From the sequence record NC_074634.1: a stretch of DNA of 26,097 bases. One strand, 5' to 3'. The notes under the pieces were generated by a model. The model was not told where the DNA came from and did not search any database. It was given only the letters and a program-made list of their open reading frames with translations. Of the stretch, positions 461 to 25,786 are shown in pieces. A program made the position numbers and the translations under genes. Within the stretch, counting starts at the first letter, position 1; every line of letters starts with the position of its first letter.

Positions 461-510
461 GTTATATCTTTTTTTATGGATAATTTTTCTCACTTTTCAG
501 ATAATAATTG
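458..510 (+). repeat. Cassette-boundary repeat R1 (oligo-T, terminator-like)
   Basis: TAAGTTATATCTTTTTTTATGGATAATTTTTCTCACTTTTCAGATAATAATTG begins at the RHH stop codon. It differs from 2228-2269 by one indel and one mismatch over about 41 nt. Confidence 0.85.
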
Positions 511-520
511 TTTATTTTTA

Positions 521-955
521 TTATTCATCTTGTTTTTGTTTAAATATATATTTTAATACTCTTTTTATTGTCTCGTCATCAAAATTTAAAATTTCAAAAT
601 GTAAATAATAGTATTTTTTAAATTTTTCCTGTATTTCTTTATAATCTATTTTTGTATTTGTTGCAATCAATCGATGAAAATGCAGTTTATGTTTTTTGCC
701 ACGCTCAATAACTGAAAATATTCCAGCGTTATACTTTTGCTTAATGTACTCTTTTGGCGGTAAGTATACCTCTCCATTTGTCGTTTCTGCTTTTCTTTTT
801 CTCTTTTTCCTGTATTTTTTTGTAGTTTCAGTCATTAAATAGAAATATTCATAATTTTTAGCTTTATTTAAGAAGTTTTTCAATTTCTCTATAGTCGCCT
901 CTGAGATATTGTATTTTAACGAAATTTCGGCGACAATAATATCTATGTCTGCCAC
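521..955 (-). CDS. rep: HUH-superfamily Rep endonuclease (SIRV ORF119-like)
   Basis: Motif 1 YFYLMT, motif 2 KLHFHRLI (HUH) and motif 3 VLKYIFK (YxxK). GTG start; exact start uncertain. Confidence 0.88.
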   Translation of the reverse strand: MADIDIIVAEISLKYNISEATIEKLKNFLNKAKNYEYFYLMTETTKKYRKKRKRKAETTNGEVYLPPKEYIKQKYNAGIFSVIERGKKHKLHFHRLIATNTKIDYKEIQEKFKKYYYLHFEILNFDDETIKRVLKYIFKQKQDE

Positions 956-2235: not shown

Positions 2236-2284
2236 TATCTTTTTTTATGCATAATTTTTCTCACTTTTGTAATAATATTTCTAC
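2228..2284 (+). repeat. Cassette-boundary repeat R2
   Basis: TAAGTTAATATCTTTTTTTATGCATAATTTTTCTCACTTTTGTAATAATATTTCTAC. Positions 2246-2283 match the reverse complement of 25658-25695 at 36/38 nt. Confidence 0.85.
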
Positions 2285-2378: not shown

Positions 2379-3686
2379 GTGGCATCCCTAGAAGAATTTA
2401 AAAAACTCTTTGAAGAAAATTCTTTTATATTTAATCCAAGGGATGAAAATCGAATATTGTACTACATATTTAGGAATACCAATATCCCTGAAGAAAAGAA
2501 GGCTAATGCATTAAAGGCATGGAGACTTGGTAATGACAATCAGTACTTTGAAATGTATAAAGCGTTTACTGACGAAATAAAATTCATATCTAAAATCGTA
2601 AAATTTAAAGAGAAAGGCGGTGAAATTGTCGCTTACTTTCAAAATGGCTTTACTGGGCGTTTCGATCCAAGGATGTTGGCAGACAATCCGGATGACGCTT
2701 ACAATTTGATGCAATCCTACTTACTAGTTAAAATCAAAAAATCAACAGACAGTTGGGAAATTTACGACATTATCCCAGTTGAGCCTGCAAAAAATGTAGA
2801 TATTGCCAAGCAATTATTACAATTTGTTGAGGCTGAGCATGTAACATATTCAATTTTACTATATGCTTTTGGCTATGACGTTGAGAAGATGGATGCCAGT
2901 GATGTTTTCTATACAATCCCGAGATTTTTCCCACTTTTTGTTTCTCCATATTCAAAAAGGCGTTATAACGTTATCGAAATTTCAAACCCTGGGACTGGAA
3001 AAACTTCAGTTTTTACAATTTTACAAGAAGTTTTTAATTTTCGATATTATACTGAACCGCCAACTTATGCCAATTTGGTGTATGATGCAAGAAATAATGT
3101 ATTCGGTGCGGTTTATTTGGCAAAAGGGCTAATCTTTGATGAAATTCAAACTTGGAAAAATAGCACAAATCAGAAAAATATGGAAGCTATAAATTCAACA
3201 TTATCGACAGGAATTGAAAATTGCATTTGGACAAGGGGTGCAGGAACAGAAAGTAAATCTGCAGTCCTTCATAGATGCCTTCCAATAATATATGCGGGAA
3301 ATCCATTATTTTTGACATTAGATAGATTTGCATCCCCTGATGTTGAGGATTATTTGCAGAAGTACGAAATTTTTACTCCTGCAATATTGGATAGGATTCA
3401 TATCATCCAAGTTGGAATAAAGAAAACCTATGATCAAATTGGCAGTAGAAGAGTGCTTTATCCTTCGGTTTTAAAAGCTCTTATCGATATTTTGCAAGAA
3501 AAACTAAATCAACAATCCCATTTTGTTGATTGTCAAATTTTCACGTCAAGACGATATGAACAGGCTGTCGACATCCAATTGATGCTAAGGACTCTAGATC
3601 TCCAAAATGATGAAATTGAAAAGAACCAAGATGAATTTTGTGCAAAATTACAGCAATATATGCGATTTATGGGCCTTGGCGGGTGA
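2379..3686 (+). CDS. AAA+ ATPase (SIRV2 gp18/ORF436-like; MCM/BrxL-type ATPase domain)
   Basis: Walker A SNPGTGKTS, Walker B LIFDEIQ, downstream TRG and LDR (arginine-finger-like) motifs. Lies between the SSB and Cas4 genes. GTG start. Confidence 0.88.
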   Translation: MASLEEFKKLFEENSFIFNPRDENRILYYIFRNTNIPEEKKANALKAWRLGNDNQYFEMYKAFTDEIKFISKIVKFKEKGGEIVAYFQNGFTGRFDPRMLADNPDDAYNLMQSYLLVKIKKSTDSWEIYDIIPVEPAKNVDIAKQLLQFVEAEHVTYSILLYAFGYDVEKMDASDVFYTIPRFFPLFVSPYSKRRYNVIEISNPGTGKTSVFTILQEVFNFRYYTEPPTYANLVYDARNNVFGAVYLAKGLIFDEIQTWKNSTNQKNMEAINSTLSTGIENCIWTRGAGTESKSAVLHRCLPIIYAGNPLFLTLDRFASPDVEDYLQKYEIFTPAILDRIHIIQVGIKKTYDQIGSRRVLYPSVLKALIDILQEKLNQQSHFVDCQIFTSRRYEQAVDIQLMLRTLDLQNDEIEKNQDEFCAKLQQYMRFMGLGG

Positions 3687-3691
3687 GAAAA

Positions 3692-4318
3692 ATGGTTTAT
3701 GAAAATAAAATTAAAGAAAGCTTTAAGAAACTTTATCCAGAAAATATCCTTTATCCATCTGAAATTGCGTACTGCTTAAGAAAAACAATTTTGGCAAGAA
3801 GAATTCAACATATAAAAAATATTGGAAGTGAGGTCGCCGATTATGGGCTGGCAATCCATAATGATGTTGAGGCTTATTTTAAGGAGAAACTTGGTTGCGA
3901 AACTGAGAAAGCAATTGAATATGAGATTGAAGGTGTAAAAATTTCAGCAAGAGTAGATTTATTATGCGGAAGTGATCTACTTGAGTTAAAAACGGTTTCA
4001 CATTTTATCCGCCAGCCTTACCAAAATCACATTGTTCAAGTTTCGCTTTATTATCATATATTATCACAACTGAATTATAAAATTGATAATGTCTATCTTG
4101 TTTATATTAATAGACAAAATTATGATGTCCAAGAATTTAAAATTCAAAAAGATCAACTTGACCAGGGATTAAAAAGCGCAATTGAGTTTATAAGGAATTA
4201 CAAAAAATACAAAGATGAACAAAACATATTCAAAATTCCAATTGGGGATACAACATTTTGTAGGAGTTGCGAATTTAGGAATATTTGCTATGGGACAATA
4301 ACAAATTTCCTTAAATGA
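3692..4318 (+). CDS. Cas4-like RecB-family nuclease with predicted 4Fe-4S cluster (SIRV2 gp19-like)
   Basis: YPSEIAYCLRK (Cys1), RVDLL..ELKT (D..ExK), QVSLY and CRSCEFRNIC (three Cys). Start moved to ATG 3692 after GGTGA. Confidence 0.92.
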   Translation: MVYENKIKESFKKLYPENILYPSEIAYCLRKTILARRIQHIKNIGSEVADYGLAIHNDVEAYFKEKLGCETEKAIEYEIEGVKISARVDLLCGSDLLELKTVSHFIRQPYQNHIVQVSLYYHILSQLNYKIDNVYLVYINRQNYDVQEFKIQKDQLDQGLKSAIEFIRNYKKYKDEQNIFKIPIGDTTFCRSCEFRNICYGTITNFLK

Positions 4319-5001: not shown

Positions 5002-5005
5002 CCAT

Positions 5006-5029
5006 ATACAAAATATTATGTATATGGAT
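5006..5029. promoter_or_regulatory. Degenerate ATTCATA-N10-TATGAAT site upstream of the MCP gene (copy G)
   Basis: ATACAAA-ATATTATGTA-TATGGAT, followed by a TATA-like TTTTTATAA at about 5043-5051 and ATG at 5083. Confidence 0.45.
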
Positions 5030-9469: not shown

Positions 9470-10885
9470 TTATCTGTTTGCTATGTTTTTAAAACCTTTA
9501 TTGTAAAATATAGGTTTATAATTTTGCAAGTACACTTTTTTCTGATCTAATTTTCTTTGTGTTTGTATCCTGCCGAGACCTTGTAGTTGTTCCCCGATTT
9601 GTTGTGCAAACTGAAGATCTGCGTCAGAAAGACCGTATAATTTCCATTTTTGTTTCCAATATTGCAAAAATTGATCATACGGTAGTGTCCTGGGACCAGC
9701 GGTATACGATAAGTTACCCTGGTATGTATATCTTGCGACTTGCAGTATTGCAGATGCCACCATTTTTGCATACCAGATGTTGTTATATTTCTTATTTACA
9801 ATTTTTTGTATTCTTTCGTATAATTCATAATTTGAAATATATGTTTCTGCATATTGAGAATTTGAAATATTTGTCGCGCCAGGTCCTAATTCTTGTAAAT
9901 GTTGTCCAAATATTTGACCGAAAACTGAAATTATTGCCCTCTCTGTCGATAAAATTGCAGATAATTGAATGTCGTTTAAGTTCTGATCTGTAGGAAAGTC
10001 TGGCATCAAAACGTTAAAGTCTAGAGGCGTAAGATCTAGGATTATACCAAGTGCATGTGAAAAGTTTTGAATTTTTATGTTGTCGGCAAGAAGTTGATAG
10101 TCATTTTCTCTTTCTGAAAAAGCGGACCGGTCAAACCAAGAGACGTCAAGTGCAACTCCGCTATCAATTATATTGTTTATCAGCGACAAAAATGCTAACA
10201 AATATTTTGCTAAGTCTGGTAAAGAATTGAAATATTGTTGTGGAGTTGTGTTTTTCTGTTGAGCCAATTTTGATAGTGCGTCAGCCACTCCAGTTTTTTC
10301 AACAAGTGAGTAGAGATAATTGTCAACCGCAGGAATTTGTGTTTTTCCAACTCCAAGATTTTCAAATGTTGTAACAGTTACTGTTGTCGGCGGATTAGCA
10401 AAATACGATTCTAATTTTTTACATGCCTGATTATTGAAAATTACTCCAGGGGCAGGGGCGTAAACTGAGGCATCAAAACTTGTTTCATCAAATATTGCAA
10501 TTTGGTACAGTACTGAACAATTTTCGACATATTGATCATAAAGTGAAGTAAAACTGTTGAGGGCGTCAAGTGCTGAAGTTGACGATAATGTCGCTAAATT
10601 GAAAATATTTGATTGCGCAGTGTTTGGTATGAAATTATTCAACACTGATGCTGAAAAATTGTTTATTGCATTTAGGAAATTAATTATGATTTGTGCGAAA
10701 GCAATTCCGTAATTGACATTCATATACGCTGGGACTACAACATTTTCAAGTGAAGTCGGTAAAGTGCTTTCAATTCCTGCTGACAACATTGCCTTGAAGG
10801 CAGGGTAAACATTTTGATTAAATATCTTATTGTAGAGATGATATTTCATTTGTGCAACTGATCTTGAACCTTTTTTCTTTGGCAT
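9470..10885 (-). CDS. Minor virion protein (SIRV2 ORF488-like)
   Basis: Size, N/Q/S-rich composition and position beside hjc. Start set at MPKKKGSRS (10885); 10918 is the alternative. Confidence 0.7.
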   Translation of the reverse strand: MPKKKGSRSVAQMKYHLYNKIFNQNVYPAFKAMLSAGIESTLPTSLENVVVPAYMNVNYGIAFAQIIINFLNAINNFSASVLNNFIPNTAQSNIFNLATLSSTSALDALNSFTSLYDQYVENCSVLYQIAIFDETSFDASVYAPAPGVIFNNQACKKLESYFANPPTTVTVTTFENLGVGKTQIPAVDNYLYSLVEKTGVADALSKLAQQKNTTPQQYFNSLPDLAKYLLAFLSLINNIIDSGVALDVSWFDRSAFSERENDYQLLADNIKIQNFSHALGIILDLTPLDFNVLMPDFPTDQNLNDIQLSAILSTERAIISVFGQIFGQHLQELGPGATNISNSQYAETYISNYELYERIQKIVNKKYNNIWYAKMVASAILQVARYTYQGNLSYTAGPRTLPYDQFLQYWKQKWKLYGLSDADLQFAQQIGEQLQGLGRIQTQRKLDQKKVYLQNYKPIFYNKGFKNIANR

Positions 10886-10926
10886 TTCACATCTGTTTAT
10901 TTTTTCTTTTCTTTTCATTTTTATTG

Positions 10927-10960
10927 CTCAATATCCAACAGTCATATTCATAATATTAAT
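10927..10960 (+). repeat. 34-bp inverted repeat, left arm (overlaps palindrome copy B, 10946-10969)
   Basis: CTCAATATCCAACAGTCATATTCATAATATTAAT matches the reverse complement of 13190-13223 at 33/34 nt. Confidence 0.9.
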
Positions 10961-11023
10961 TATATGCATGTTGCGCATTGAATTTATTTTAACTTGTTGC
11001 GACAAAATAAATAGTGATAAAAA

Positions 11024-13138: not shown

Positions 13139-13189
13139 TTTGATTATTTTTTCCTTAAATGCAATAAATCAAACGACATAATTCTTATG

Positions 13190-13223
13190 ATTAATATTAT
13201 GAATATGACTGTTGAATATTGAG
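13190..13223 (-). repeat. 34-bp inverted repeat, right arm (overlaps palindrome copy C, 13181-13204)
   Basis: Reverse complement reads CTCAATATTCAACAGTCATATTCATAATATTAAT. Confidence 0.9.
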
Positions 13224-17825: not shown

Positions 17826-17849
17826 ATTCATATAATCAATATTATGAAT
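17826..17849. promoter_or_regulatory. Palindrome ATTCATA-N10-TATGAAT (copy D)
   Basis: Perfect arms, 50 nt upstream of the methyltransferase ATG, with TATA-like CTTTTAAAA between them. Confidence 0.7.
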
Positions 17850-17898
17850 ATGCAAATTGATTGTTTGCTTTTAAAACGTCCACACTAGGAATTAAAAT

Positions 17899-20632: not shown

Positions 20633-21886
20633 TCACTCTGGCGGTATTTCTTTAAATATTTCATCAAGTTGCACACCTTGCATTTTTCTAATGACGTATG
20701 TCAGTATTCCAACAATTGGCGGTATAAATATCGTTGCAATATCAAAATATAGATTTCCAGTAAACATTTCTGACCTAAATTGTAAATTTGTAAATGAAGA
20801 ATATAAAACCATAGTTGCACTAAAGACCAACACGATTGCAGACAATACCGCAGTCGGCAAAATTCTTCTATCTTCCTTTACAAATTTCAAACTTGCAAAT
20901 GCAACAATTAGATAATTCCAAAATATAAACCATAGGTCATCAACAATCAAACTAACGTGAAAGCCCAGATAATTTTCTACAAAGTTGAAAATTTCTGCAA
21001 TTCCAAAACTAAGTAAAATTGAATTTGTTGGCGTTCCGCCTTTAACATTTGCTAAGAAAGCGGGCAAGACTCTATCAAACGATAGCGCAAACATGACTCT
21101 AGTTGTCGCCCCTGCATTTATCATAGCATATAGCAAATACCATGTTAATGCAGATAATGCAACAATTTCTAATTCTAGATTTACGCCGACTATAACTATT
21201 AAAATTGCAAATATCGCAGTAACGGTATATGCAATAAAATATCCTGCAAGTAAGCTTTTGCCAATTTTTTGCATTTCTCCCGCAAAATATGATGGGGAAT
21301 TTATAAATGCGTAAAGCATCATTACAAAAAGCGCAGTCATAGTGAGAGTATTTGTATTTATCTCAAGTTGTGTAGGTAAAACTGCATGATTTAAATTAGT
21401 CACAATCATAATTATAATACCAAGAATCTGAAATGCCACTAATGCGACAACTGCTTTCGCATAATATTTCACTTTTGACGCTAACAAATAGATTATTCCA
21501 ATATAAACTGTCGTAATTAAGAAAAGATCTAAATTTGACAAATTAAATCGCATAAATTCTAAAGACGCTAGGACTGGCATAGACAACCAAAATGATGTTA
21601 GGACCGCCATACCGCTAATTGTCCCTACAATTCCTCCAAAAGCTCTTGCAACATAAACATAATCTCCAGTAGACCTTGGGATTATTCTGTTCAACAAATA
21701 GTAGTTTAGCATTAGTGGAATACCTAAAATTGTCGCTAAAAGAATTGATAAAAACGCGTTAGCGTGAATGAGAAATAAAACGTAGGAAACTGCCCCCGCA
21801 GGTCCTAAAAAAGCGAAATTTAAGGAAAAAACATCTATTGGCTTAAATTCCTTTATTAACCCAGTTGACTGCCTTAAGAATTTCAT
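20633..21886 (-). CDS. APC-superfamily amino acid/polyamine permease (about 11-12 TM)
   Basis: FLRQSTGLIKEF..FSLNFAFLGP, PRSTGDYVYVARAFG and RVMFALSFDRVLPAFLANV are APC signatures; multiple hydrophobic segments. Confidence 0.9.
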   Translation of the reverse strand: MKFLRQSTGLIKEFKPIDVFSLNFAFLGPAGAVSYVLFLIHANAFLSILLATILGIPLMLNYYLLNRIIPRSTGDYVYVARAFGGIVGTISGMAVLTSFWLSMPVLASLEFMRFNLSNLDLFLITTVYIGIIYLLASKVKYYAKAVVALVAFQILGIIIMIVTNLNHAVLPTQLEINTNTLTMTALFVMMLYAFINSPSYFAGEMQKIGKSLLAGYFIAYTVTAIFAILIVIVGVNLELEIVALSALTWYLLYAMINAGATTRVMFALSFDRVLPAFLANVKGGTPTNSILLSFGIAEIFNFVENYLGFHVSLIVDDLWFIFWNYLIVAFASLKFVKEDRRILPTAVLSAIVLVFSATMVLYSSFTNLQFRSEMFTGNLYFDIATIFIPPIVGILTYVIRKMQGVQLDEIFKEIPPE

Positions 21887-21904: not shown

Positions 21905-21921
21905 TGACTACATTTTTAAAT
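21905..21921 (-). promoter_or_regulatory. Conserved TATA-GTC promoter for the permease operon, overlapping the tfb stop codon
   Basis: - strand reads ATTTAAAAATGTAGTCA, about 30 nt upstream of ATG 21886. Confidence 0.65.
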
Positions 21922-22720
21922 TTAAAATTTTTGCATTTTTCCTAAGCCCCGCCCCAGTGACCCCGCATTTTTCTTCAATCATTGGCTGGGTTATAAGGTA
22001 TCCACTTTGTTTAGCTAAATAATATAAAATTGTACATGCAACAGTTTTTGGATTTTTACCCTGGGCTTCAATTTCTTTTGCAATATTAAGCGCTTTTTCA
22101 ATTATCTCAATTGGCAATTCCAGCCTCACTCCACATTCTTTTATATAATCTTCAATTATAAATCGTGGTATTTTTTCATCAAATTCTTTTAATATCCTAA
22201 AATACATACTAACAAATTCCTTTTTTGGGATTCCGAATAATTCATCAACTTTTTTATAATATTCATCAAATGGCATTATAATTTTCAATTTCCTATAAGC
22301 TAAATAAATAGAAACCAAAACAATAATTTCATATCCTAGATATCTTAAATGTTTATTTTTCCATAGCTTTTGTAAAATTCTACCTGCCTCTTGTTTTATT
22401 GCATCATTAGCATTCAATTTTTCAACTGTAGATGATAAAAATCTTAAAGCATGCACTAAAATTCTCTTATTATTTGAATAAATTGCACATTTTTTCATCT
22501 TTTTTGGTTTAATTGCAGTCGTTGGTAGGAAACCTGAATTAACGAAATTGTTTGGGTTTATTGCTTTAGCTCTTGCCCTATCTTCAAACTGCTCAACATT
22601 ATAAGCCCTCCAATCAATACCTTCATCTACAACTCTATCTTCTAGAACTTCTCCAGTTTCAGTGCAAATATATTCGCCTCTCTCTGCATCAAATATGATC
22701 TTATCAGGAGGACAGCTCAT
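21908..22720 (-). CDS. tfb: Transcription initiation factor B homologue
   Basis: N-terminal CPPDKIIFDAERGEYICTETGEVLED..DWRAY closely matches the Sulfolobales TFB1 ribbon/B-reader as recalled; two degenerate cyclin repeats follow. Confidence 0.92.
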   Translation of the reverse strand: MSCPPDKIIFDAERGEYICTETGEVLEDRVVDEGIDWRAYNVEQFEDRARAKAINPNNFVNSGFLPTTAIKPKKMKKCAIYSNNKRILVHALRFLSSTVEKLNANDAIKQEAGRILQKLWKNKHLRYLGYEIIVLVSIYLAYRKLKIIMPFDEYYKKVDELFGIPKKEFVSMYFRILKEFDEKIPRFIIEDYIKECGVRLELPIEIIEKALNIAKEIEAQGKNPKTVACTILYYLAKQSGYLITQPMIEEKCGVTGAGLRKNAKILNLKM

Positions 22721-22782
22721 GAGAAGATCTCAAACCGCCTACATTTTTATTTCTTGCCAAGAACTACAATTTCAAACTTCAT

Positions 22783-22806
22783 ATTCATAATATTATAAAT
22801 ATGCAT
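22783..22806. promoter_or_regulatory. Palindrome copy E upstream of tfb
   Basis: ATTCATA-ATATTATAAA-TATGCAT, 63 nt upstream of the tfb start. Confidence 0.65.
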
Positions 22807-22828
22807 TGTTTGTTCAAATTAAGACAAT

Positions 22829-22883
22829 GTAGAAATAGTATATCAAATGTGAGAAAAATTAACCATAAAAAAAGAGAATTAAC
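22829..22883 (-). repeat. Cassette-boundary repeat R3
   Basis: - strand reads GTTAATTCTCTTTTTTTATGGTTAATTTTTCTCACATTTGATATACTATTTCTAC, starting at the stop codon of the 74-aa ORF. Confidence 0.8.
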
Positions 22884-23648: not shown

Positions 23649-24491
23649 TCATATAACTCTACAAAATTGCTTTTTCTTACATTCTTCAATTATATCTTCA
23701 AATTTAATATTATCTATTTCATTCGTAAATCCATAATCTTGTAAAATTACTTTATACATATTATCTCCAACAACAAATTCGGAAACTTTATAGAACCATG
23801 CCTTATGCCTGTCAGCATCTAGTTCTAATGCCAACCACCCAATATTTGCCTCCCTCCTACCGTACCAGTAAACTTCTTGCCTACCTCTTGGAATAAATAC
23901 TGCCTTCTCTTTAAGCTTATTGTATAAATCCAAATCTTGATATTCAAAAATGTAAAGACCATGACCTAGAATTCTCCAGTAAATTTCCCATAACGCAAAA
24001 TGATCAATTATATCTGGTAATGACAATATGTTGAAATTACCAATATTGACGACATAAGGATGTGCAATTCCAAATTTTTCAGCAGGAGTTAACTTAGTTG
24101 CTAAATCATTTGCAAAGACTTTATTTAATCTTGTAGTATCCACAGTGTAATAATTATAAAGTATAAGATTATTATTGGAAATTATACCATGAATTGCTAA
24201 TTTATCAAATTTCCATAAAATGTACTCTGTCGCAATCATATCTTGAATTGATGGGGCATCTGGACCTCTTGGGTGGGTATGCAAAATGGCGTGAACAGTT
24301 TCTGGCATGTACTTTTGCAAAGGACTGAGATCTGCACTGCCTTTGTCACCCTGATAATAATCGCTAAACCACTCGCCTAAAACAATTAAATATTCTCTAT
24401 CTGTGGTTTTTGACTTTTGATAAACATCTTTCAAAAAATCTAGGTTTTTAAAAATAGTAAGAACATTATTTCTAACTTTCGATCTGGACAT
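23649..24491 (-). CDS. JAB/MPN+ (JAMM) domain protein with an unknown C-terminal domain (280 aa)
   Basis: Upstream Glu (REY) followed by HTHPRGPDAPSIQD, an exact H-x-H-x7-S-x2-D motif (nt 24240-24281). Confidence 0.8.
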   Translation of the reverse strand: MSRSKVRNNVLTIFKNLDFLKDVYQKSKTTDREYLIVLGEWFSDYYQGDKGSADLSPLQKYMPETVHAILHTHPRGPDAPSIQDMIATEYILWKFDKLAIHGIISNNNLILYNYYTVDTTRLNKVFANDLATKLTPAEKFGIAHPYVVNIGNFNILSLPDIIDHFALWEIYWRILGHGLYIFEYQDLDLYNKLKEKAVFIPRGRQEVYWYGRREANIGWLALELDADRHKAWFYKVSEFVVGDNMYKVILQDYGFTNEIDNIKFEDIIEECKKKQFCRVI

Positions 24492-25657: not shown

Positions 25658-25695
25658 TAGAAATATTATTATAAAAGTGAGAAAAATTAGGCATA
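25658..25695 (-). repeat. Cassette-boundary repeat R4
   Basis: - strand TATGCCTAATTTTTCTCACTTTTATAATAATATTTCTA matches R2 at 36/38 nt. Confidence 0.85.
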
Positions 25696-25786
25696 GAATT
25701 AGCTAAAGAATAAGGTTAAAAAATAAAAATAAAAATAGAAACGCAAAAAATTAGAAGGAATAGAAAATAAAAACAGGAAAAAATGA

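Follow-up and report, generated by a model that had tools for sequence, protein, structure and literature searches.

What would a virus that lives on its host's RNA polymerase (RNAP) gain from a general transcription initiation factor of its own? To our knowledge archaeal viruses encode no RNAP, and they were believed to rely wholly on TBP (the TATA-binding protein) and TFB (transcription factor B) of their hosts. The question is raised by a gene of Saccharolobus solfataricus rod-shaped virus 1 (SSRV1; Rudiviridae, genus Hoswirudivirus), whose complete linear genome is the whole stretch of DNA analysed here (the window; 26,097 nucleotides). The window is 100% identical to MN876841.1 / NC_074634.1 over the 25,000 bases searched, and the record has the same length (26,097 bp). 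The gene, SSRV1_gp30 (21908..22720, minus strand), is an intact open reading frame of 270 amino acids plus stop codon that GenBank annotates as 'putative transcription initiation factor B', and we refer to its product and its orthologues as viral TFB (vTFB). Both the gene and a hypothesis about its role are already in the literature, the copies of SSRV1, ARV2, ARV3 and MRV1 having been published: a transcription initiation factor was listed with the genes that only the Italian rudiviruses have (Baquero et al. 2020; bioRxiv 10.1101/2020.01.16.907410), and a 2022 review gave the function of vTFB as unknown, with TBP-DNA binding and RNAP recruitment for initiation not established (PMC9501531). 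New here are a domain-level dissection of the protein, the deletion of its B-linker helix, which bears on promoter opening, and a negative result on the re-targeting of its DNA recognition.

The reading that we favour, and to which we give an even chance, is that gp30 would serve as an auxiliary initiation factor, binding the TBP-TATA complex and recruiting host RNAP with altered promoter opening and a relaxed reading of the TFB recognition element (BRE). We infer from sequence all that concerns its binding and activity, building on what is observed of gene identity, fold, domain-wise conservation, deletion, synteny and purifying selection. If the reading is true, archaea would have, in a general initiation factor borne by a virus, their counterpart of the sigma factors of phages or of the TFIIB-like factors of eukaryotic viruses.

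That the virus encodes a TFB, as an earlier note on this DNA had proposed from the letters alone, is borne out by matches to Pfam Zn_Ribbon_TF (PF08271; residues 3-39, 37.1 bits for a cut-off of 29) and to the Pfam TFIIB repeat (PF00382; residues 191-264, 29 bits for a cut-off of 23.6), by a TFB fold model and by the GenBank annotation. The AlphaFold2 model, built from a 31-sequence alignment, has a mean pLDDT of 78.5, which is ~90 over both cyclin repeats (residues 83-265) and low only at residues 31-40 and 63-79. The PDB entries that Foldseek matches best to it are chains of TFIIB from pre-initiation complexes (E = 1e-11, probability 1.0), and it also superposes on the TFB core of Pyrococcus woesei (1ais_B, target TM 0.76, root-mean-square deviation 3.0 Å; 1d3u_B likewise, within a range of 3.0-3.3 Å). 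Judged by this model, a complete two-cyclin TFB core is present even though Pfam detects the second repeat alone: the first cyclin fold (22175..22474, minus strand; residues 83-182) has a 4-residue insertion in its YYKK region and no Pfam match, and the second (21911..22174, minus strand; residues 183-270) is recovered by PF00382 at 191-264, by AlphaFold2 and by Foldseek. As modelled, vTFB is a bona fide TFB paralogue that is structurally complete save for the missing B-linker helix.

It stands well apart from cellular TFB1. The NCBIfam TFB model PRK00423 scores it at 109.7 bits, far under the 384-bit cut-off, and in a quick maximum-likelihood tree the five viral sequences group in a single clade with full support, outside the TFB1 clade and parted from every cellular sequence by a long, fully supported branch. 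Because this stem is very long (5.85 changes per column), the donor lineage cannot be placed. The closest relatives of gp30 are the vTFBs of MRV1 (66% identity), ARV2 (64%), an uncultured relative (P0004, the fifth vTFB, on a 945-bp contig that gives no gene context; 54%) and ARV3 (52%), below which identity falls to the 29-35% of cellular TFBs. A tblastn search of 50,697 phage and archaeal-virus records found TFB matches only in the four hoswirudiviruses and in two Yellowstone Sulfolobales viruses, YNP1 and YNP2, and these six records agree with the remark of the earlier note that basal factors are rare in crenarchaeal viruses. Among 1.84 billion representative proteins, a profile search returned a single full-length cluster of vTFBs and a fragment of 102 aa (P0034), and then ordinary TFBs; the gene is absent from ARV1 and SIRV2.

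The four hoswirudiviruses have hosts in three genera (Saccharolobus, Metallosphaera and Acidianus), and in 4/4 of them the vTFB gene is intact and syntenic, found at one and the same place on the minus strand, convergent with the gene of a glycosyltransferase. The ARV2, ARV3 and MRV1 proteins share with gp30 52-66% identity, the B-linker deletion, an NSGFLPT..KPK block and the helix-turn-helix (HTH) pattern x-x-[AG]-[LI]-R; they differ in that only SSRV1 and ARV2 have the genes of a permease and a 207-aa protein between vTFB and the glycosyltransferase, that the C-terminal tail of SSRV1 is shorter and that the recognition helix is different in each virus. The gene is among the fastest-evolving of those shared (64/66/52% identity vs ~80-94% for most shared central genes, of replication and structure). 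The YNP1 and YNP2 proteins, likewise virus-encoded TFB homologues of crenarchaeal viruses, represent an independent lineage at 25-30% identity: they have no first ribbon strand and no ribbon Cys, their HTH is near-canonical (TQKEIAE..NI.E.T.RNRYKE), and at the C-terminus they carry an additional CxxC...CxxC zinc ribbon. Their genes lie at 2998-4002 in YNP1 and 2998-4020 in YNP2, with a DNA methyltransferase gene next. The metagenomic TFBs nearest to the viral clade were considered as further viral copies, and two of them, P0017 and P0014, were rejected, being cellular paralogues with SlaA, thermopsin and glycosyltransferase genes as neighbours. The first of them belongs to an uncultured Sulfolobales-like organism (ENA ERZ1684502 contig, TFB at 10001-10945), has an HTH with 6/17 consensus positions and adjoins S-layer genes; the second is another paralogue, on a different contig of similar coverage.

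To what extent does vTFB still follow the host protein? We counted how many of the positions conserved in at least 90% of a reference set of 80 cellular TFB1-type sequences, taken from Sulfolobales and Desulfurococcales genomes, are kept in vTFB. The ribbon keeps 15/15, the B-reader 6/12, the B-linker 2/14 (with a 20-residue gap in addition), the first cyclin fold 16/44, the second 9/23 and the HTH 6/17, and retention in the ribbon exceeds retention in the core (Fisher p = 4e-6). Residue by residue, 27/30 ribbon positions are identical to those of Sulfolobus sp. TFB P0023, with C3-D28 identical throughout, and the two cyclin folds share 27/102 and 11/60 residues with a Sulfolobus-type TFB. The contrast that the earlier note had drawn between a host-like ribbon and diverged cyclin repeats, which are 18-26% identical to a Sulfolobus TFB1-type protein, therefore stands. 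Residues invariant in the family that vTFB retains are Y139, A141, R143, G221, Q245 and R260. Among the four viral orthologues dN/dS is 0.14-0.32 for the whole gene, lowest in the ribbon (0.02-0.10) and highest in the HTH (0.20-0.56), all of these being rough values because dS is saturated. Overall, vTFB and Sulfolobales TFB1 have in common the domain order, the ribbon with its two-Cys variant (CPPDK...ICTETGEV), the W and R of the B-reader, the two cyclin folds and the HTH Arg; they differ in that vTFB is without the B-linker helix, is 32-34% identical overall and keeps ~36% of the conserved core positions.

The B-ribbon (CPPDKIIFDAERGEYICTETGEVLEDRVVD; 22625..22714, minus strand; residues 3-32) falls within the PF08271 match, has three predicted strands and carries 2/4 canonical zinc-ligand Cys, as does the TFB1 of Sulfolobales hosts. 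It is the only part of vTFB held to the host sequence. Codons equal those of cellular genes at only 8-21 of 28-33 identical residues (about one third to one half), and because so few of them match, the identity is held at the protein level; the same figures speak against the ribbon having been taken over from the host by gene conversion in recent times, an idea that we rejected. A near-invariant ribbon marks the whole family in this lineage: across the 15 cellular proteins tabulated, paralogues as well as divergent orthologues, between 11 and 15 of the 15 positions are kept. Ribbon-only proteins exist as well, P0032 and P0033, with 80-87% identity to the vTFB ribbon, and they lend something to the idea that vTFB is an accessory protein in the manner of TFB3, joining complexes that contain TFB1 and stimulating RNAP recruitment without reading the promoter. 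Host TFB3 interacts with RNAP and stimulates only when TFB1 is at the promoter (PMC6101591). A truncated activator of the TFB3 type keeps the ribbon and has neither B-finger, core nor HTH (PMC6101591); vTFB, unlike TFB3, has a full two-cyclin core and an HTH scaffold under purifying selection, and it keeps B-reader residues that TFB3 lacks (PMC6101591). We consider such a co-activator role improbable, the least so favoured of the explanations weighed here.

Behind the ribbon, the B-reader and what is left of the B-linker (22475..22624, minus strand; residues 33-82) keep W37, R38, R50 and G63. In the reader, for which model confidence is low, the 6/12 conserved positions include W37, R38 and R50, and the loop RSRVG has become RARAK. 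Between the remnant of the B-linker strand (G63-F-L-P-T) and the first cyclin helix all vTFBs are missing 20 residues (after about residue 75). With element boundaries taken from Pyrococcus furiosus TFB1, where the B-linker helix comprises residues 84-98 (PMC13502027), the missing segment corresponds in the alignment to that helix. The AlphaFold models agree, vTFB having only coil at residues 61-82 and a cellular Sulfolobus-type TFB having a helix at 94-111 ahead of its first cyclin helix. The earlier note was right that the HTH is divergent and missed this deletion. The stretch that is left contains a strongly conserved, virus-specific block, NSGFLPT..IKPK, in which N61, S62, G63, F64, L65, P66, T67, K71, P72 and K73 are invariant across five vTFBs. 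These 10 invariant residues argue that the segment entering the polymerase cleft is functional, as a decoy consisting of a ribbon alone would not need such a block.

The deletion makes plausible the main rival explanation, that vTFB is a dominant-negative TFB for host shut-off, which would hold TBP-TATA, or the RNAP dock and cleft, or both, and, being unable to open promoters, trap the polymerase or exclude TFB1. In archaeal TFB, B-linker deletions disrupt promoter opening (PMC13502027), and here the whole helix is removed while the ribbon is perfectly kept. A viral precedent for inhibition is RIP (ORF145) of Acidianus two-tailed virus, which targets the clamp and cleft of host RNAP and imitates the B-linker with its helix-4 and tail (PMC9501531); it is a proven global inhibitor, and differs from vTFB in being a capsid-protein paralogue with no sequence or fold kinship to TFB. 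A blocker bound at promoters would, however, hit the viral genes too, for the viral BRE and TATA are the same as those of strong host promoters (PMC11065993). Purifying selection on the two-cyclin core and on the reader block asks for more than a decoy sequestering RNAP needs, and shortened linkers are also seen in cellular TFB paralogues, with gaps of 5-14 residues; among such paralogues it is not rare for the HTH to have drifted and the linker to be shortened. Titration of RNAP by vTFB is possible, and the dominant-negative explanation as a whole we regard as a minority prospect, though one to be taken seriously.

Does the C-terminal HTH, then, read a different DNA element? The earlier note called the BRE-reading helix rewritten and inferred either a new DNA specificity or a titration of RNAP, and its quotation of the HTH (TQPMIEEKCGVTGAGLRKNA, residues 244-263) is exact. 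The domain (TQPMIEEKCGVTGAGLRKNAKI; 21926..21991, minus strand; residues 244-265, with predicted helices at 245-252 and 256-269) retains T244, Q245, I248, G253, V254 and R260 of the consensus TQK..A..AGVTEVTVRNRY derived from the 80-sequence alignment. These 6/17 positions are fewer than in most cellular paralogues (Mann-Whitney p = 0.004), which is a point for a switch of promoter class, in which vTFB, with new DNA specificity, would drive a set of virus-specific promoters. That this helix in particular was rewritten to a new specificity is not supported, on three counts. First, the HTH is as diverged as the remainder of the core (35% retention in the HTH and 37% in the cyclin repeats; 6/17 vs 25/67 positions, p = 1.0). 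Second, every other domain is more constrained among the orthologues: the recognition helix reads GAGLRKNAK, ASALRMNTR, DTALRRNTG, ESALRKNTK, DGAIRKNKQ and VIGLREQIK in six vTFBs, and aligned with human TFIIB the equivalent of R286 (R260) is invariant and that of V283 (A257) varies (A/S/T/S/G/I). V283 and R286 we take to be BRE-contact residues of human TFIIB. A fixed new specificity predicts otherwise than this variation and the high dN/dS. Third, the canonical promoters of rudiviruses with vTFB share their BRE profile with those of SIRV2 and ARV1.

The third point follows from the promoters themselves. Terminal genes of SSRV1 and its relatives have the core promoter (G/A)AAGA-TTTAAA(A/T)A-TGT(T/A)GTCA, which is nearly that of SIRV2 (AAGATATAAAAATGTCAT) and of ARV1, and the BRE base profile, with A at -3/-4 and G at -2 and -6, is equal in viruses with vTFB and in those without it (SIRV2, ARV1). 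A purine-rich BRE is optimal for Sulfolobus TFB, and the canonical viral BRE matches it (PMC11065993). A distinct BRE was looked for by comparing the promoters of vTFB rudiviruses with those of SIRV2 and ARV1, and none was found; nor was covariation between HTH variants and BREs seen across four viruses. The vTFB HTH is, to judge from these comparisons, probably relaxed and not re-targeted.

A shared promoter element of another kind keeps the question of a promoter class alive. Motif B (CATATTCATAATATTATGAATATG) occurs in SSRV1 at 5003-5026, 10943-10966, 13184-13207, 17829-17852 and 22780-22803, with a half site at 2303-2317; there are five exact 15-mers in the window, and 0/100 shuffles reach the observed total match count. 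It ends 16-28 nt upstream of the TATA box of gp11, which encodes the major capsid protein (MCP), of gp20/21, gp23, gp25 and gp30, has a further copy upstream of gp08, and is placed in the same way at the orthologous genes of ARV2, MRV1 and ARV3. The motif is multi-copy in the four viruses with vTFB; ARV1 does not have it, SIRV2 has it at a level near background, with one copy preceding the MCP gene, and the BREs of the genes that share it (the central genes gp08, gp11, gp20/21, gp23 and gp25, and gp30) seem by inspection not to be purine-rich; this distribution speaks for a class of promoters peculiar to the vTFB viruses. The four viruses form one genus, though, so the co-occurrence of motif B and vTFB amounts to a single evolutionary event. 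As an element specific to vTFB the motif is unlikely, being palindromic, upstream of TATA and present at the MCP promoter of SIRV2, a virus without vTFB. Its distance from TATA is the geometry of an activator site and not that of a BRE, and its sequence fits the consensus of the host activator Sta1, ATNT-N8-(A/T)NAT. On the MCP promoter of SIRV1, the site bound by Sta1 lies ~30 bp upstream of the core promoter, and Sta1 is of help when TBP or TFB is in short supply (PMC1635249). Because of its palindromic form and upstream position we read motif B as probably a dimeric activator site, not a BRE. On this evidence together we hold a promoter-class switch to be unlikely. Slighter still is the chance that vTFB works only together with motif B, which would give a self-reinforcing, virus-specific middle/late transcription programme like a phage sigma-factor switch.

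The vTFB gene itself lies behind one of these sites. Its putative core promoter (22744..22758, minus strand) consists of a BRE-like GGCAAGA followed by the TATA-like AATAAAAA and then TGTAGG; its TATA begins 31 nt ahead of the ATG, and the sequence is the same in ARV2. Upstream of it is the 24-bp motif B near-palindrome (CATATTCATAATATTATAAATATG; 22780..22803), self-complementary at 22/24 positions, and beyond that a T-tract, terminator-like repeat, motif C (22817..22875, minus strand; repeat family I2-I5), which ends the upstream gp34-gp31 unit; on account of this repeat we take the vTFB gene to be its own transcription unit. A promoter of its own, preceded by a terminator-like repeat and by a palindrome common to replication and structural genes, is in keeping with an auxiliary initiation factor.

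How such an auxiliary factor could work may be pictured from its parts. A TFB captured from a host of Sulfolobales or Desulfurococcales type would have become fixed in Hoswirudivirus. Its two cyclin folds, to go by the fold and the conserved scaffold residues, would bind the host TBP-TATA complex; its ribbon, near-identical to that of host TFB1, would by virtue of that conservation dock on host RNAP; and its reader region would enter the polymerase cleft. The B-linker helix that normally aids promoter opening would be absent from the complex, with a short conserved basic stretch in its place, and the BRE-reading helix, keeping only its Arg and otherwise variable, would probably read the BRE in a relaxed, not a re-targeted, manner. 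The net effect would likely be an extra, virus-controlled supply of initiation factor for viral promoters that are AT-rich and easily melted. vTFB may need the help of TFE and of upstream activator sites, and may escape host control of TFB1. The best functional analogy for a linker-modified TFB is TFB2 of P. furiosus, whose reader and linker sequences are divergent, like those of vTFB, and which still initiates, with weaker opening (PMC13502027); that protein is cellular, euryarchaeal, heat-shock-induced and not close in sequence, and its function was tested, whereas vTFB is known from sequence. The strongest support for an auxiliary factor, which leaves us evenly poised between accepting and doubting it, comes from the purifying selection that acts on the architecture as a whole, the segment entering the cleft included, from conservation across three host genera and from the TFB2 precedent.

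Several observations weigh against that role. Family-conserved positions are altered at 28/44 sites in the first cyclin fold and 14/23 in the second, and because of these changes TBP binding by vTFB is not assured. Since B-linker deletions disrupt opening in archaeal TFB, a vTFB without the helix could be inactive or inhibitory. The related rudiviruses SIRV1/2 and ARV1 do without vTFB, and host TBP, TFB and RNAP transcribe the homologous MCP promoter of SIRV1 in vitro (PMC1635249), so that promoters of this type do not require the factor. A literature search for later functional studies of vTFB found none, and with them no biochemical or in vivo data.

Some features of the surrounding sequence may be added. 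The canonical promoter of the downstream permease gene, gp29 (TTTAAAAATGTAGTCA; 21905..21920, minus strand) overlaps the last vTFB codons and the stop codon. gp29 (20633-21886, minus strand) encodes a 417-aa multi-pass membrane protein that is annotated as an amino-acid transporter, has no Pfam match, and is 87% identical to ARV2 gp34 and 34% to a SIRV2 permease; MRV1 and ARV3 are without gp29 and its neighbour gp28. On the other side, in gp34 (23649-24491, minus strand; 280 aa), there is an HxHx7SxxD motif (HTHPRGPDAPSIQD) of the kind typically seen in JAMM/MPN metalloproteases, along with a weak Prok-JAB match, and this fits the 'putative metal-dependent deubiquitinase' of Baquero et al.

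The repeat to which motif C belongs is an element of 45-60 nt that begins with TCTTTTTTTATGNATAATTTTTCTCAC and is found at 465-525 (plus strand), 2236-2284 (plus), 22817-22875 (minus) and 25658-25705 (minus). Three copies directly follow the stop codons of gp02, gp07 and gp31, and the fourth lies ~80 nt downstream of gp37; in sequence the element resembles a conserved T-tract terminator to which a further conserved tail is joined. Finally, the annotated start of gp20 (10918-10957) is 39 nt from motif B, right after a TATA-like box of the form AATAAAAA, and ARV2 (gp25) and ARV3 annotate the start further downstream; going by the sequence, one of the ATGs lying downstream is probably where gp20 really begins.

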